Assembly (NCBI GenBank): GCA_900088475.1
Contig: FLMG01001193.1
Span: 1-64,000 of the forward strand
Direction: 5' to 3'
Source of the DNA: Hyphochytrium catenoides
Taxonomy: Eukaryota > Protista > Hyphochytriomycota
DNA: 64,000 nt
The translations under genes and the position numbers were made by a program. Below, in pieces: positions 33,892-57,238 of this stretch. Positions within the stretch are counted from its first letter, which is position 1, and each line of letters starts with the position of its first letter. The notes beneath the pieces are model-generated. The model made no database searches. It was not told the origin of the DNA and was given only the letters and a program-made list of their open reading frames with translations.

Positions 33892-35860
33892 ATGAGGTCG
33901 ATTTTGTTCTCCCTTCTGTATGGCGTCTGGATAGCCCTTCCAGGCGTTCTGGCTGCTCCCAAGAATAACGCAACTGAGATCGTGCGCGTTCCCCTCTACT
34001 GGCATCAGAAGGGACCATTAGTAAACTCCTCCATAGCGCTAGCCAAGAAGTCATTGTCGAAAGGTGACGATGTCGTCAAAGGTAAATCATTCCTTACCCT
34101 TATGTAACTTTTGTTGCTGGGCTTATACCTTGCACCTTGCATGCAGTGCAACTGGCTCAGAGCAATCATAATCGGGCGCTCACTTTTTATGGTTTTATGA
34201 AGATTGGTACTCCACCACAACTCCAGAGTGTGATCTTCGACACTGGGTCGTCAGACACCTGGGTCCAGGGCGATGATTGCCAGAACTGTAATGCGGCTAC
34301 CACTTTCCGTCCATCTGACTCCACTACGTTTCAACGGAAGTGCAAAGGCCTTCGAGCTTGTCTCTTCCAAGACGAATATGGCTCAGGATCGACATCGGGG
34401 ACCATTGTCCAGGACAAGGCGTGCATAGGGGACTGGTGCCTGGAAGATCCTTTGCAACTGGGCATTGCTGAGGAAGAGACGGGAGATATCCCACGAGTCC
34501 TAATGACAAGTGGGGTTTGTGGCCTGGGGTTCTCCTCACTTGCTAGGTATTCAGTTCCCTCACTTGCAGGTAGGTTATATAGGCTGCGACACAAGGAATT
34601 TGAATAACTGACGTTCATTTATGGCGTAGAACGGATGGGAGTGTTCTCCTTTGCACTACGCCCTAATGGAGAGTCCATTATGACGGTGGGAGGAATAGAC
34701 GAAACACTGCTGGGAGAAGGGGAGGTATGGCGGGATATCAAGGTTATAAAGGTGAGTCCGATCATCCCTCAAAGTTAGACAGGAGAACTAGGTCCTCAAA
34801 TTATTGCTTCGTCTCTTTAATCCAGTACAACGGCAAGTTCTCGTATTGGACCGTCTCCTTAACCCAAATGTCCATTGGAAGCTCCACCGTTTGCTCTGGG
34901 GAGTCTCCCTGTGTCGCGATCATGGATACTGGGACCAACCTTATCGCCGCACCTGCCTCCCTCTTTGAAAAGGTGAACCGGACCCTCAGACCCTCAGACA
35001 CACCCTTGCATATGCTAACCGCAAAACCTGCAGACTATGAGGATCTTCCGAGAAGAGTTTGGGTGCCAATTAGCTATGGGAATTGCCTACGTGTGCGATA
35101 AATCTGTAAGGTCGAAGTTGCCGAACCTGTCGTTCTCCCTTGAGGGACTTGATGGACAGTCTTACACCTTCACTATGGGTCCTGACACTTACGTCATCCC
35201 GTTGGAGAGCACAAGCTACATAGAGATTGGGATCATAAGTAATCCATTGGTGGTGAGTCCGTTAGACACGCTTCCTATCTGGACGATATCTTTAAAAAGA
35301 GTCCTGGCTTGCCCTACAGGAATCTCGGGCTTGGATTCTTGGTCAGACATTCTTGATGCAGCACTACGTCGCTTTCGACACAAAGACGCCTGCAGTATCG
35401 ATAGCTTGTCACCCTGACTCCTGCGAGGGGCACACGCTCCCAATTGACCCACAACTCCAGCAAGCCACTGCGAACGATGATACGTCAAGAATTCTGATCA
35501 ACGATATGACGGGCATTATAATGGTAGTACTGGGAGCAGGTAAATCTACCATCGTTAACTTTCTTTGGTACAGCTCTCTTGTCTTTTATCTCACCATCCT
35601 TTCCCTGGGCAGTGTTCCTGGTAGCTTCGATGGCACTTTGCGTTTCGATGATGGTGATGGAGAAGTCTATGTCTACACCGGCAGGTAAGGAAAGTGCCAC
35701 GTCATCCTTGTCTTCAGATGAGTCATCACTTACAGCTCCATCTGCTAGAAGTGGCTGGCGAGGTTTCTGTCAATTCAAGCTTGATGGAAGCTTTCAAGGA
35801 GCCGCTTCTTCATGGCAGTGCTGGCGTCTAAGAGGATGCGCCTGGGCTATCATACAATAG
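33892..35860 (+). CDS. pepsin-like (A1) aspartic protease with signal peptide and C-terminal TM
   Basis: IGTPPQ..VIFDTGSSDTW, YGSG, GVCGLGF, AIMDTGT, WILGQTFL, hydrophobic segment at ~35505-35660. Last exon ambiguous (stop at ~35830 or 35860). Confidence 0.92.
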
Positions 35861-36027
35861 TTAAATATCATTAGGTAGCGCCTGGCTTTAAGCTACCCTA
35901 GAATAAAGGCTGGGATGCTATTATAAGAATAGCTCACAGAGTGATCAATGTGAACCATTCAGACCCCCACAAGAACGCCTTCTCCCTTCTAACATGTACG
36001 ATGCCAACAAGGCAGTCCTAATCGGTC

Positions 36028-38247
36028 CTAATAGCAGAGACAAGCAGTAAGCATGTCCAGATGTGCCACTGGCTCCTCCATCACCGCTTCTAGCAACTCG
36101 GTGGCGAGCGAGCAGGCCCTAGGTAGGTCTTGACTCTCGTCCGCCGGAGTCGCATTGCACGTTCGCTGTAGATCGAAGACCAGGTGTACTAACGTCGTTG
36201 CTGCGCCTTGGGACACTGAGAGCGGATTCCTAATGTTTTCCAGCAGAGTGCACAGGTGAGAACACTTCTCATAGGTGTTCTCAAATCGCTAGTAGGGAAG
36301 AGAAAGAAGGGAAGGAAGCACGATGTTAGACTATCCGGCCACTCAAAGACTAGCTTAAGGCTTGCCGTCCGCTAACCTTTTCTTGGTACGAGACTGCATA
36401 CAAAGAGACCAACCGGCTGATGAGACGCTCTTCTAGATTGACGCCGCGCGCCCTGGATATAACTTGCAAAAAGCAATCGAGAGGGAGGATGGCCACCTCC
36501 TCAGGACATTCCTCAACAAGATCCGAAATCTCGCCAACAAACACTCGAACACAGCGCTCGATTAAGGACTGCCCAGCTAATCCTGCGATGGGACCAAGCC
36601 TGATAGCTGTGCATAGCACTTTTTGGAGAGCCTGACTTTGGAAACTAAAAGCGCCTTATCAGCGTCGATATCCTACCAACGTCTACCTAGAAGGAGAGAA
36701 AAGACCTACCCGGATATAACGGCGCAGGCCGGGGGAAAGACGCGATCCTCCAAAAATTTAGTAGTGGCGAAGACTAAGCTGCCTTCACCGTTCCTGTCCA
36801 TTCCTAAGAAATGCCCAGCGCAATGCAACGCTGATACGTTATTCTCGTCGATGTGCACCATTGTAATATCGTAGTAAAAGGTAACAGCCATTTCAAAGGC
36901 CTCAACGCCCCCTGGGAAGTCGTTGATCTGGATAGTCTGCCGCCCACTTGGGCTATTGCTACCAAGGTTGGCAAACGCCTCTTCTAACAGGCGACTGACG
37001 GGCAAAACAATCGAACTGTGGAGGCGAAACACATGTCCTTGGACCTTAACCGTGAGATTGCAGAACTTCTCATAGGACTTCCAACTGGGGCATTGCAACA
37101 GCAGCTTGCTAGTTTGAGGTCGCCCTTCCTGTTCACGTCCCCCAAACCTGCCGTCATGGCCGTTCCCCGGCCCTGCCTTCAGTTTCTTCGGGCAATTGCT
37201 CGCTACAAGGCAATGAGAGGCCTTAGGGGAAACCCTCAAAGAAAAGGACAGAGACTGACCCAAGGCAAAAGACAGAGTATTCAGAAGAAGCAAACAAACA
37301 TCCGGATAGCTTCTCTCACCTAACTTGCTTTTGTCCATGCTTGAAGTAGGTCCCAGCTTGTGTTTCCGGGTACTGCTCAAACTTAACTTTCCCATCGAAT
37401 TCATCGTCTTCATCACATTCCCCACAGGCCTGTTGGTGCCATTGTCATCCCTGGTAGCGAGTGAACCATTACACGCAACTACATCGGCCGTTGGTTGAGT
37501 CCTGCTGTTAGAATATCCAGGGCCTTGGCTGGGATAGGTGGTACGCCCTCCAGCTTGGTAATACGAGTGTTGATGCGGCGTCTTCGTTAGCGGATGTGTA
37601 CCAGCAGTACCATTGGGCTTCAGTAGCTTTGCCTTAGCCTTACTGTGCCGGATGGAAAAGACGAGATTGCGACATCGACAGCAAGAGGCCCTGGTGCTGT
37701 GCATACATGTGTCATCCTTCGGACAATCGGGAATTTTGCAACTTTTGCCACCGCCCTCTCTCCTAGCCCCGCACATACCCGCCTCGTGCTGCCCACACGA
37801 GCCATCGCAAGTACAGTGCATGCAGTCCCCCAGCTTGCGGGAGCAGCTGGCTAGCTGACAAGCCTTGCGCGCAGTGCTAGACTTGCGCATGCTCTGTTTG
37901 ACTTTCGTGGCGTGAGACTTTGGCCCTGCAGACGGTGGTGGAGGGGCAATACCAGTAGCGTTGGCTGTTGTGCCGGAAGTCAGCGGTCGAGAAGGTTGTC
38001 CACCGAGTGACGGTCTAGTAAGGGCAGTGGATCTATCTGTAACGCTACCTGCGGTAAAGTTGTCCGCTCTAGACTGGTCTATCAGCTCACACAAAGGGCC
38101 TTTCACCTCTGCACCCACTGGCCCCTGATCTTTATCGAGTAAGCGCTTGTCCACTGTATTTGCTGCTGTAGGAGAAGTCCTGCTTTGCTCAACCTTCATC
38201 ATCAAACTAAGATGCTGCTTTTGAGGCTGTTTGCTGGCGATGCCCAT
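36028..38247 (-). CDS. BTB/POZ protein of NPH3/NRL type with N-terminal Cys/His-rich module
   Basis: LTVKVQGHVFRLH..IVLPVSRLL, IQINDFPGGVEAFEMAVTFYY, NVSALHCAGHFLGM, GSLVFATTKFL, then after splicing LIERCV..EEVAILPLDCFLQVI. Confidence 0.75.
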
Positions 38248-49804: not shown

Positions 49805-50727
49805 CCGATAAGCGTTGAAAGTAAGTACCAGGCGCTCTGACTTGTAAGTCTCGCCAGTAGAAGTGGTCTAGTGGCATTAGAAGAAGAGATAACATAGCAC
49901 CGCCGCTGTCATTCGCGGCCATCGAGGTCTCCAGACGCTCCTATAGATAGACTTTGGATCTAGAACGGAGCACTTCCCTCCCTTATTATCAGAACCTCCC
50001 AGCATCATCAGAACTTCCTGGAACAACGGAGATTTTTTCTGACATCACTGCCCTTCTATAAAATGCTTCAAGGACAAGGTTTTCCTCACCTTTCTACCAC
50101 CCAAAGCTGTGAAATACTGTTTAGAAACACGATCACATTTTCCTTGAATATGGAGAAAGAGCTACCTTGAAGACCCGGTAAAAACCGTGCCAGGGTTTCC
50201 TACTGTAAGATTCCTCCCGACATTACGATTTAGAACCGGATATTTGGCGAAGGGGTGAAGTTTGGTGAAAGGACGCGATCGGCGCACGTGACCTGAGCTC
50301 GCTCGCTCGCTGATGATTCTTTCCTCTTGTGACTCTTCAAGAGCCTCTTCGTCCTTGCCTCCTTGCCTTCCGAGTTCTGAGGGTCGGATGACCCTTGGTT
50401 TTAAACTCTAATGAACTCTGGACCCACAGCGCTACAATAGCAGTAGCTCTTGCTGTCAGCATCTCTTATCCTTAATAAGACTTCAGCGCTTTTTGCCTCA
50501 CCTTTCTGAATTGGGCTCGCTGGTCTTTCATTACCAGAGGTACGGGAGTCTAATGACACCTCAGGGTTCAACTCTCGAACGAATCAGTCTGTCCTGTATC
50601 TGAGCATTCGGCTCTTACTCTTTGAAGGCTTGGATCTGACCAAGACCTTTTAGGTCCATTGACTCAAGATTAGGGATCTCTCAAAAGCAGCACTACGTTG
50701 CGTCGTACAATTTATTCGTCTATCAAG

Positions 50728-52482
50728 ATGGTGAGTCGAGCCTCTCTCAACTGCGGGATGGCGCTGGTGGGGATTGTGTGCCTGGCTGCGGGCACGTCAG
50801 GCGCCGAAAGTAGTGCTCCCTACTCCGGTGCGATCAAGTACTGGGTCGACCCCGACACTCCTGAAAGTGCTCACGCAATGGTAGCCACAGATGGCACCAA
50901 GATGATCCTAGTTGGCAGTGATGAGTTTGATGAAGAAGGAAGAACCTTCGCTTCTGGAGAGGATAAGATGTGGACGGCTTTGGACACTCCTGATATAACA
51001 AACCAAGCGATTGAATACCTGCATCCTTCGATGGTGACTACAGAGAGTGGGAACCTAAAGATGACTCTCTCTAAACAGATGATGGGAGGGAGGGAGTATG
51101 TCGGTGCGTCCATTCAGAGTTGGAATAAGTTTTGCTTCACTGGTGGGATTGTTGTTACTAGGAATTTATGGCCCAACGCTACGGGTACTTGGCCGGGGGC
51201 ATGGATGATAGGCAACCTTGGTCGACCCCAATACGAAGAGTCATGCAGGGGCGTCTGGCCATTCAGCTATAACATCTGTGACAAGAGCCCGGGAGCTAGT
51301 GGTCAGCGCATCAGCGCTTGCAACCCTAACCCTGGAGTTGGGCTGAACCCTAACCAAGGTCGTGGAGCTCCAGAGATTGACATCTTGGAGGCATGGGCCA
51401 GCCCTTCTACATACTTCTTCCCATCCTCTTACCAAGTTGCACCTTCCCTTCCGTTATACTTCAAGCCCTATGACGGACTGAAGCCAACGCAGCCCTATGG
51501 TGGACCACAAGCTAGGTCGTGGTATGGGGACGTCAAGTACGGGACGGACATCAACGACTGGTACGGGCATAACGGCGAGGGCTACTGGTCCAACGCTATT
51601 GCTAGCAAAAAGGTACTTACCTTCGCTGAGAGCTCGCAGTACAATGTGTACGCTGTGGAGTGGAAGCAAGGCGACACAGACGGATATATCAAGTTCCTGC
51701 TTAATGATCAGCTGTTGCTCTCCATACCGGCCTCGGCACTAAAGGGCAGATGCGACCCTGATGGCAACTGCGTTGGAGATAGGGATATTCCGAACGAGCC
51801 TCTCACCTTTATCTTCACCATGGCCCTTGCGCCTAGTTGGGCCGGAGGCGCTGCGGGACTAAGTGAGGTCCCAGCCCATTTCTACGTAGATTACATTCGC
51901 TGGTACCAGGATCCTGAAAAGGTCAGCATCGGATGTGATCCCAAGGACTATCCGACCAGGAAGTATATTGAGGCCAACCAGAAGCTTTACGGACCTCCAG
52001 CCTTGCCGACGCCACCAGAAGAAGCAACCTATTACTTCAGAAGCTCTCTTCCTATCGCAAAGACCCTGCCGTCACCTACCAAGACGTCTCCCTCATCTCC
52101 TGATAGTCCCAATAGCGAGACTCCTTCACCAGATATTGTGAACTCTGATGGAAGTCCGCAGCCGACCACCACGACGACGGATAACCCAGATAAATCATCA
52201 TTTTCCGGGCTCTCCTTAACGGCCAAGATGGGTCTTATTGCCGGAGGGAGTGCTCTATTGCTCGCCCTGGTTGCTGGTCTTATCATTTACGCTGTGCGCA
52301 TGAGCAAGAGAAGGAACCGTCATGATGACGAACATCCTGAAGCTTCTGGCGGAGCCCAACAGTCCCATGAAGAGACTCCCAAACCAGCTGCAACCACCGG
52401 GACCTATAATCGGACGGATTCAGTGAGTGGCCCTACTTCATCGACAGCGGCTACTGATGCCGCTCAGATAAGCAGTGTGTAG
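50728..52482 (+). CDS. KRE6/SKN1-like GH16 beta-glucan transglycosylase, type I membrane protein, no intron in CDS
   Basis: WVDPDTP, LVGSDEF, QSWNKFCFTGG, WPGAWMIGNLGR, WPFSY, GRGAPEIDILE, VDYIRWYQ, GCDPKDYPT. N-terminal signal peptide, S/P/T linker, TM. Confidence 0.92.
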   Translation: MVSRASLNCGMALVGIVCLAAGTSGAESSAPYSGAIKYWVDPDTPESAHAMVATDGTKMILVGSDEFDEEGRTFASGEDKMWTALDTPDITNQAIEYLHPSMVTTESGNLKMTLSKQMMGGREYVGASIQSWNKFCFTGGIVVTRNLWPNATGTWPGAWMIGNLGRPQYEESCRGVWPFSYNICDKSPGASGQRISACNPNPGVGLNPNQGRGAPEIDILEAWASPSTYFFPSSYQVAPSLPLYFKPYDGLKPTQPYGGPQARSWYGDVKYGTDINDWYGHNGEGYWSNAIASKKVLTFAESSQYNVYAVEWKQGDTDGYIKFLLNDQLLLSIPASALKGRCDPDGNCVGDRDIPNEPLTFIFTMALAPSWAGGAAGLSEVPAHFYVDYIRWYQDPEKVSIGCDPKDYPTRKYIEANQKLYGPPALPTPPEEATYYFRSSLPIAKTLPSPTKTSPSSPDSPNSETPSPDIVNSDGSPQPTTTTTDNPDKSSFSGLSLTAKMGLIAGGSALLLALVAGLIIYAVRMSKRRNRHDDEHPEASGGAQQSHEETPKPAATTGTYNRTDSVSGPTSSTAATDAAQISSV

Positions 52483-56131: not shown

Positions 56132-57238
56132 ATGTGTAAGCCGGTGATACAAAACACCAAGTTTGCAGCGGCCTCGGCGCCGTTTTTCGTCGGCAAGAAC
56201 CCAGGTCTTGCCGGTCAGCCTTACAATGGCGGATTTGCTGCAGGTTCACCATACACCAATGCGGCACCTTATAACCCCAAGCAGCTCTATGAGTTCAACA
56301 TGGTTCAGACACCAGAGGGAAAAAATGTGAAGCTGGATCTAAATGCGGACCAGCTGTTGAACCTGTGGACAACCGTCAAGGATGTGAACGTTGTCGCACC
56401 CGCTCCAGTCAACTGTGCTCCTGTGCCGGTGGTTCCTGCTCAATCATTTGAAGAGCTCGCGCCTATTGAGGCATCTGCTATGAAGAATGAAGACAACTTA
56501 ACGTTCGATGACCTTTCTCTAGAGTTCCCGGAACTGCAAGATACTGATATCACCCCTCTTTTTGACATCTTGCTGGACGATGATGTCGCTGATATACTCA
56601 GCGAGTTTGTTGAAAGTGACAGCCTCGGACAATCTAGTGGCACGGCAGTCAAAGCCCAGTCATCTCAGGTTCAAGCCATTTCACCCAAAGCCAAGTCTAG
56701 TCATCACAAGATTTGCAGTCATGAGGGCTGCACAAAGTATGTGCGATCTCGTGGACTGTGCAAGGCCCATGGAGGTAGCCTACAATGCGTTGTTCCCGAC
56801 TGTGGCAGACAGAGCCAGGGAAATGGCTTGTGTATTAAGCACGGTGGTGGCCGACGCTGCGAAGTACCGAAATGCAATCGCGCCGCTCAGTCGAATCATA
56901 GATGCAAGAAGCATGGCGGAGGTCAACGATGCACAGTGGAGGGCTGCTATAAGTCTTCTCAGGGAGGCGGCCTCTGCCGGTCACATGGCGGTGGACAACG
57001 CTGCGGAGCCCCAGGGTGCAGTAAGGGGGCACAGCGTGATGGCTATTGTGCAGCTCACGGTGGCATTCGTCTGTGCGCAGTGGAAGGCTGCACAAGAAAT
57101 GACCGCGGTGGTGGACGTTGTGCTTACCACGGTGGCGGTAAGAGATGCAAGGTAGAGGACTGCATGAAGCCATCAAGAAAGCATGGACTCTGCGCCTATC
57201 ACTATAGAGCAATTGAAGGTCCTCAACGCCCAAGATAG
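56132..57238 (+). CDS. WRKY19-like Cys3His (C-x4-C-x9-C-x2-HGG) repeat protein, single exon
   Basis: Seven 24-aa repeats such as CTVEGCYKSSQGGGLCRSHGGGQR, preceded by an acidic-hydrophobic stretch. No WRKYGQK motif. Confidence 0.88.
   Translation: MCKPVIQNTKFAAASAPFFVGKNPGLAGQPYNGGFAAGSPYTNAAPYNPKQLYEFNMVQTPEGKNVKLDLNADQLLNLWTTVKDVNVVAPAPVNCAPVPVVPAQSFEELAPIEASAMKNEDNLTFDDLSLEFPELQDTDITPLFDILLDDDVADILSEFVESDSLGQSSGTAVKAQSSQVQAISPKAKSSHHKICSHEGCTKYVRSRGLCKAHGGSLQCVVPDCGRQSQGNGLCIKHGGGRRCEVPKCNRAAQSNHRCKKHGGGQRCTVEGCYKSSQGGGLCRSHGGGQRCGAPGCSKGAQRDGYCAAHGGIRLCAVEGCTRNDRGGGRCAYHGGGKRCKVEDCMKPSRKHGLCAYHYRAIEGPQRPR

Follow-up and report, generated by a model that had tools for sequence, protein, structure and literature searches.

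A BTB protein of Hyphochytrium catenoides related to the NPH3/RPT2-like family and its relatives in pseudofungal stramenopiles

In the present study, we analyzed a stretch of 64,000 nucleotides (hereafter the window) from contig FLMG01001193.1 of the hyphochytrid Hyphochytrium catenoides (GenBank assembly GCA_900088475.1). A gene on its minus strand (36028–38247) encodes a 649-residue protein with a BTB domain, which the original prediction, made from the letters of the window, had likened to the NPH3/RPT2-like (NRL) proteins. We concluded that, by its sequence, this BTB domain belongs to the NRL (BTB-NPH3) subfamily. However, the window protein falls outside the NPH3 family proper, and it is probably not an NPH3 protein of phototropin signalling. 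Six further sequences (P0021, P0151, P0152, P0061, P0127, and P0025) share its BTB domain and helical C-terminal domain. Together they form a small family that comes so far from pseudofungal stramenopiles, namely the hyphochytrid, Aphanomyces invadans, and several metagenomic or SRA organisms. The window protein is probably a pseudofungal relative of NRLs that has retained their adaptor chassis and acts as a dimeric substrate adaptor of CUL3, the adaptor role being one that we infer.

Kinship of the BTB domain with NRL proteins

The searches and predicted folds described below used single exons or natural intronless relatives; joined exons served only for the frame, length, and coordinates. 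The BTB domain lies at 36736–37086 on the minus strand (residues ~349–465), as supported by phmmer, hhalign, matches in the PDB, the Pfam match of a relative, and an AlphaFold2 (AF2) model of P0151. A word-index protein search with the BTB region returned no matches, and an exhaustive phmmer search was therefore justified; the word-index search with the family alignment returned only already known members. When the 134-residue BTB part was compared with 1.84 billion representatives, 147 matches were obtained at E ≤1e-3, and the NRL motif is present in nearly all of those with a single domain. In a Pfam scan of 129 phmmer matches, NPH3 was found in 70 and BTB in 67, while BACK or Kelch was found in none. 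The top matches that we inspected for a D/E-x-PGG motif and that carried it all showed the NRL signature around it, repeat-rich giant proteins being set aside. The 12 full-length NRL matches that were checked by name were all from land plants, including the Selaginella 'root phototropism protein 3', NPY2 of Eucalyptus, and proteins of Ginkgo, Welwitschia, Ceratopteris, and Musa.

The giants set aside were the top three phmmer matches and P0005, all with ankyrin or tetratricopeptide repeats. In P0001, P0003, and P0005, these repeats are combined with a STAND-NTPase, and query residues 49–99 were matched 8–12 times. Since their scores summed many weak repeat matches, we regarded these scores as spurious and not as a sign of homology.

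Profile comparison strengthened the link to NRLs. The BTB domain of the family aligned with that of 28 NRLs at 99.9% (hhalign, E 1.1e-31). In ESM features, the neighbours of the BTB exon were streptophyte BTB clusters, several of them with NPH3 (score 0.96, 207 shared features). The NRL signature that the original prediction had recognized is thus borne out, and the motifs it quoted lie on the minus strand where it had placed them. The BTB fold was indicated by several types of evidence. The relative P0152 scored 30.9 bits with the Pfam BTB profile (cut-off 20.5), and a phmmer search of the PDB gave weak full-length BTB matches, the best being BACH1 (E 1.3e-3, residues 29–151 of exon 2). The hhalign result (99.9%), the AF2 model of P0151, and the BTB matches obtained with Foldseek agree with this. 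Pfam recognized at least 14 canonical BTB domains in the host genome (4759 records, 61.0 Mb), in which no paralogue of the window BTB was found. Since Pfam detects these ordinary host domains but not the window BTB, the latter is an outlier.

The position of the family was also examined in a BTB tree (47 rows, 155 columns, LG+C20), with three canonical BTBs of the host genome as the outgroup and with 12 of the 28 NRL rows checked by name. The pseudofungal family formed one clade (96/94), which was sister to the 28 NRLs (92/88). The 28 NRLs formed a clade of their own (81/78), and animal and other NRL-like proteins fell outside. The split of the family plus NRL and NRL-like proteins from the three canonical host BTBs was weakly supported (61/96). 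The phylogeny with plant NRLs that the original prediction had proposed as a check therefore placed the family beside them and not among them; since the domain is short and the tree holds no green or red algae, we take this position to mean no more than that the family does not nest among land-plant NRLs.

We then considered the predicted fold. Residues 150–435 of P0151 were modelled with AF2 from an alignment in which the family and the window exons were combined with the N-terminal ~330 residues of NRL and NRL-like proteins. In this model (predicted local distance difference test [pLDDT] 93.5, predicted template modelling score 0.88), the BTB domain is followed by nine helices. The best Foldseek matches in the PDB were CUL3-bound BTB-BACK adaptors (KBTBD2, KLHL11, SPOP, and KLHL3), with E ~1e-3 and 250–297 aligned columns. 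Among the ESM Atlas models, the closest was a 'Root phototropism protein 2' cluster (template modelling [TM] score 0.68 over 248 residues, root-mean-square deviation 4.0), followed by BTB-BACK-Kelch clusters (TM 0.49–0.57). Pfam found no BACK domain (PF07707) in the exons or the intronless relatives; the predicted helical domain aligns with the BTB-BACK of KLHL11 and KBTBD2 (TM 0.37–0.49). A Kelch propeller had no Pfam match, and nothing follows the helical domain in the window protein. The single-sequence AF2 model of the BTB exon was unusable (pLDDT 34).

The original prediction had also claimed that the resemblance continues past the BTB into the start of the NPH3 domain. To follow the likeness along the chain, the family alignment (A6, with the window exons as separate rows) was compared by hhalign with the 28 NRLs (A5; the 12 checked by name were all from land plants). 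The whole family matched whole NRLs at 99.9% (E 2.5e-31), with family columns 16–250 on NRL columns 17–288 of 604. The post-BTB regions matched each other with P 5.6e-5 and a score of 39.1 over 104 collinear columns. In the controls, cross-pairings gave P 0.46–0.67, reversed profiles scored 13–15, and the maximum scores were 22.8 in 150 column shuffles and 24.0 in 150 block shuffles. The family linker matched the NRL linker with P 6.9e-5. The family tail matched NPH3 proper, counted from the WWFED motif, with P 0.002 and a probability of 15% over 61 columns (NPH3 positions 5–74), and off-register pairs gave P ~0.3.

No match to PF03000 (NPH3) was obtained at E ≤10 in exons 3 and 4 or in the intronless P0021, P0151, and P0152, and none was found in the whole host genome by a search that had no positive control. 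The conserved core of NPH3 (its C-terminal three-quarters), the coiled coil, and the regulatory tail had no counterpart in the family; the hhalign match stops at about NRL column 288 of 604. The claimed continuation thus holds for the collinear post-BTB region, which scored above the shuffle maximum of 24. However, it covers only ~61 columns of NPH3 and lacks a Pfam NPH3 match, and the HMMER comparison with PF03000 that had been proposed as a check was negative for every exon and for the intronless relatives. On the evidence of these profiles, we regard the likeness to the NPH3 start as real but thin.

Gene structure and the pseudofungal family

A three-frame reading with GT..AG introns resolved the gene into four exons on the minus strand. 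Exon 1 (37320–38247), which was read from an open reading frame (ORF), encodes a low-complexity N-terminus and a Cys/His module; its donor (G/GTGAGA at 37319) is backed by a loose contig end of X6, a relative that is ~92% identical. Intron 1 (37203–37319, 117 nucleotides, GT..AG) is skipped by the X6 contig, whose match breaks off at 37320 and is taken up again at 37202, and this stretch is not present in the relatives. Exon 2 (36710–37202) bears the BTB domain. Intron 2 (36645–36709, 65 nucleotides, GTAGGT..TTTTAG) coincides with a change of frame, and the relatives are continuous across it. Exon 3 (36377–36644) encodes the first half of the helical post-BTB domain, including the ILPLDCFLQVI stretch (36458–36490), and matches the NRL linker and the NPH3 start. 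Intron 3 (36289–36376, 88 nucleotides, GTTAGC..CTACTAG) is marked by a loose end of X6 at 36290 that reads the end of exon 3. Exon 4 (36031–36288) encodes the other half of the helical domain, which reaches to the C-terminus, and its product can be aligned with the C-terminal ends of P0151, P0021, and P0152. It is also covered by contigs of X6, X8, and X9, and is followed by the stop codon TAG (36028–36030).

The loose ends of the X6 contigs join exons 1 and 2 and exons 3 and 4 exactly at the modelled junctions, and the intronless relatives are collinear and continuous over all three intron positions. Intron 1 keeps the reading frame and contains no stop codon, and is therefore hidden inside an ORF of 513 residues. 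A plain ORF reading of this intron adds 39 false residues, and the intron was exposed only by the spliced contig of the relative. The span originally assigned to the protein (36028–37060) does run from the start of the BTB domain to the stop codon TAG, but it comprises only the 3' two-thirds of the gene with three of its four exons. The observation that the protein ends early was correct, with ~175 residues (about 170) following the BTB domain.

Pieces of the BTB gene were also found in environmental data within window positions 35966–37728. The soil metagenome X4 contained 100%-identical pieces of 151 nucleotides, and the plant-associated metatranscriptomes X8 and X9 contained pieces that were ~92% identical and shared the variants of X6. 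The X8 and X9 pieces suggest that a close relative is active on plants.

In the family, P0151 is a longer form of P0017 and P0152 a longer form of P0024. The C-terminal region is ~170 residues long in all six relatives and ends where the window protein ends. Since the relatives share this end, the short C-terminus represents the native architecture and not a truncated NRL. P0025 is encoded on contig QUSY01000520 (GCA_003546525.1) of the oomycete Aphanomyces invadans; the prefix QUSY01 corresponds to A. invadans NJM0002 (PMC10270590). Because members occur in Hyphochytrium and Aphanomyces, we consider the family to be common to hyphochytrids and oomycetes. The suspicion of a non-plant host was correct, in view of both the source organism and the Aphanomyces member. 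A green alga or the photobiont of a lichen, which had come into question as the host since one relative is from an environmental metagenome, was rejected; the SKN1/KRE6 gene described below and the Aphanomyces member speak against it.

The Cys/His-dense module of exon 1 (37657–37872, minus strand) is a putative zinc-binding module of ~65–72 residues, with 16 Cys/His in ~72 residues. It was seen in four of the six relatives (P0021, P0151, P0061, and P0127) and is nearly invariant among them; P0152 and P0025, as called, begin downstream of it. This near-invariance extends from Hyphochytrium to Saprolegniales-like sequences. With ~77% identity versus ~35–40% for the BTB domain, the module is the best-conserved part of the family, and Lys/Arg-rich stretches flank it. 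It had no match in Pfam, the PDB, or the ESM Atlas, and occurs as a single copy with no paralogue in the host genome. The module probably binds zinc and is of no recognized type; it may be loosely reminiscent of CXXC-type zinc fingers. A metagenome scan with the family alignment gave 64 pattern matches, none of which was confirmed.

The convergent neighbour of the BTB gene is an aspartic protease gene (34197–35493, plus strand), identified by tblastx against the metagenome scaffold of P0021 (L004, guanine-cytosine [GC] content 41.6%), a Pfam Asp match in L004, and a DTG motif in the ORFs. L004 has the same convergent aspartic protease neighbour (L004 5387–6510), and this two-gene microsynteny of BTB and aspartic protease is preserved at ~35–57% protein identity between the window and L004. 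Two further genes of the window were noted. A SKN1/KRE6 beta-glucan synthesis protein is encoded at 50698–52482 (plus strand). Its best database relative is 53% identical, and its named relatives, from haptophytes, fungi, and oomycetes, are ~35% identical; the lineage is poorly sampled. In an ORF at 56132–57238 (plus strand), a WRKY19-type zinc finger of 24 residues is repeated seven times (Pfam PF24906, E 5e-53).

Proposed function and evolutionary origin

A BTB domain followed by a helical 3-box/BACK-like stack is the chassis of CUL3 adaptors and of NPH3 itself. The host has a CUL3 orthologue on contig C3807, of which an exon matches residues 52–129 of human Cullin-3 (E 1e-16 versus 1e-3 for CUL4A); introns split the CUL3 N-terminal domain on this contig into short exons. 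Since the window protein has this chassis and the host has a CUL3 orthologue, we favour a dimeric CUL3 adaptor, which we regard as rather likely. In this model, the protein would dimerize through the BTB domain and bind CUL3 through the BTB domain and the first post-BTB helices, which may resemble a 3-box. It would then serve as a substrate adaptor of the CUL3 ubiquitin ligase, with its targets chosen by the N-terminal Cys/His module, the helical domain, or both. The host has four cullin loci in total: besides the CUL3-like C3807, the N-terminal exons appeared by eye to be CUL4-like on C1317 and CUL1-like on C3462 and C2453.

Several points weigh against this assignment. Pfam BTB, BACK, and NPH3 gave no match in the whole ORF or any exon, even at E 10, and the window protein is recognized as a BTB protein by profile, transitive, and structural evidence. 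The TM scores to PDB structures are modest (0.37–0.49). As NRL sequences were included in the AF2 alignment, the likeness to RPT2 is not independent evidence. The similarity to NPH3 proper is weak, as described above (P 0.002, probability 15%, 61 columns). Moreover, the splice support comes from contigs of the ~92%-identical relative and not from host RNA, and 36300–37320 is covered by no contig.

The alternative that survives best, although we consider it unlikely, is a BTB-zinc-finger-like protein that regulates transcription or chromatin. The Cys/His module would bind DNA or chromatin, and the BTB domain would only dimerize and recruit co-regulators, with no role in a ubiquitin ligase. The conservation of the module, which exceeds that of the BTB domain, and its Lys/Arg-rich flanks are consistent with this idea. 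The PDB sequence matches were mostly BTB transcription factors (BACH1, NAC1, Kaiso, and ZBTB7A); however, the PDB contains many BTB-zinc-finger structures, so such matches say little. The module matches no known DNA-binding domain. Furthermore, the post-BTB helical domain fits the CUL3-adaptor BTB-BACK proteins and NRLs, whereas animal BTB-zinc-finger proteins do not have it. The roles of regulator and CUL3 adaptor are not mutually exclusive.

A generic BTB-BACK protein, such as a KLHL/KBTBD-type adaptor after the loss of Kelch, with a superficial likeness to NRLs, appears quite improbable. This case had been named in advance as one that would overturn the NRL assignment, and the NPH3 profile score on which it turned is indeed absent. 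The best solved-structure matches are BTB-BACK proteins, and BTB-BACK-Kelch clusters ranked second in the atlas. However, Pfam BACK is absent as well, and the phmmer matches contained NPH3 in 70 of 129 cases and BACK or Kelch in none. The hhalign match of the BTB domain to NRLs (E 1e-31) and the failure of Pfam to detect it alongside the canonical host BTBs also argue for the NRL subfamily, and the tree, with weak support, separates the family and the NRL and NRL-like proteins from three of those of the host.

The remaining alternative is a true NRL that was taken from a plant by gene transfer and later truncated, and that acts as a phototropin/AGC-kinase-linked membrane adaptor like NPH3 and RPT2. 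The sister position to land-plant NRLs, with animal and NRL-like proteins outside (92/88), the life of hyphochytrids and oomycetes on or near plants, and the transcripts of a relative in plant metatranscriptomes are compatible with such a transfer. However, we consider it highly improbable. The tree does not place the family among land-plant NRLs, and at least seven sequences conserve an architecture of its own, with an additional module at the N-terminus and a short C-terminal part. Members occur in both Hyphochytrium and Aphanomyces, a relative with 41% GC shows local synteny, and the introns are of the host type. Moreover, the family has no NPH3 core, no coiled coil, and no regulatory tail at the C-terminus, and phototropin is not mentioned in the genome paper of Hyphochytrium (PMC5795050).

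BTB-NPH3 proteins and the NPH3 domain have been described as plant-specific (PMC1257465, PMC4327156, PMC11313873). However, Pfam detected NPH3 (65.9 bits) and BTB (50.9 bits) in the Haliotis protein P0046 and NPH3 (53.1 bits) in P0075 of Ptychodera flava. Both genes are located on chromosome-scale scaffolds of 39–60 Mb. Other proteins with Pfam BTB and NPH3 were P0004, P0049, P0111, P0115, and P0145, some of which (P0004, for example) group with the protein of Haliotis. The occurrence of BTB-NPH3 in a mollusc and a hemichordate indicates that the family is not restricted to plants and contradicts the description as plant-specific. The earlier characterization of NRLs as land-plant proteins therefore fits all 12 named matches but not these animal proteins.

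The original prediction had left the choice between a deep origin and a gene transfer. The non-nested position in the tree, the introns, the added module, the local synteny, and the fact that two pseudofungal classes have members make a recent transfer from plants unlikely, and, as far as these sequences indicate, we favour an old origin over a recent transfer. The animal BTB-NPH3 proteins and the position outside land-plant NRLs point in the same direction, but an older transfer may have occurred. We tentatively suggest, as a possible rather than a probable scenario, that BTB-NPH3 is an old eukaryotic family that was patchily kept in plants, some marine invertebrates, and pseudofungi, and that the pseudofungal branch has retained, or was reduced to, a minimal chassis of NRL-type BTB and BACK-like proto-NPH3 fused to a zinc module not described before. 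If so, the NPH3 domain would have originated when the BACK-like helical stack of a CUL3 adaptor was elaborated at its C-terminal end.

The present results show that the BTB domain of the NRL type, together with the first part of the helical region behind it, also occurs in heterotrophic stramenopiles, one of them an oomycete pathogen of fish. The pseudofungal family may serve as an outgroup to separate the conserved CUL3-adaptor chassis of NRLs from the plant-specific signalling addition. A short relative that is predicted to fold well (~290 residues, pLDDT 93) may be used for structural work on the BTB-linker unit of NRLs. Moreover, the family bears a highly conserved Cys/His module that has so far been uncharacterized.

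Comparison with known systems

The window protein shares with the NRLs (NPH3, RPT2, NPY/ENP, and NRL5) the motif of the BTB subfamily (D/F-PGG..AFE...FCY...NV..L.CAA..L.M; hhalign E 1e-31). A collinear linker (L..C..L.P.A....I..RC) and the first NPH3 helices (L..L....F..VI......G........L..YA) follow in both, and the predicted BTB and helical stack superposes best on the RPT2 model cluster, NRLs being part of the AF2 alignment. In contrast to NRLs, the window protein has no Pfam NPH3 score and ends after approximately a quarter of the NPH3 domain. The core, the coiled coil, and the C-terminal tail for phosphorylation, 14-3-3, and membrane binding are missing from it. The N-terminal Cys/His module is an addition that NRLs do not have, and the host is a heterotrophic stramenopile with no known link to phototropin.

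The BTB-BACK(-Kelch) adaptors (KLHL11, KLHL3, KBTBD2, KBTBD4, and SPOP) resemble the window protein in that a stack of helical hairpins directly follows the BTB domain. They are its best solved-structure matches, with 250–297 columns over both domains, and their partner CUL3 has an orthologue in the host. However, Pfam BACK and Kelch are not detected in the window protein, and its kin in sequence are NRLs and not KLHLs. It also has no C-terminal substrate-binding propeller or MATH domain; its candidate recognition module is N-terminal and Cys-rich.

The animal BTB-NPH3 proteins (the Haliotis 'At5g48800-like' protein and that of Ptychodera flava) pass the Pfam NPH3 threshold (65.9 and 53.1 bits) and have the full length of 558–605 residues, whereas the pseudofungal family fails it and is short after the BTB domain. 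Nevertheless, the animal and pseudofungal proteins have in common an NRL-type BTB domain in an organism that is not a plant.

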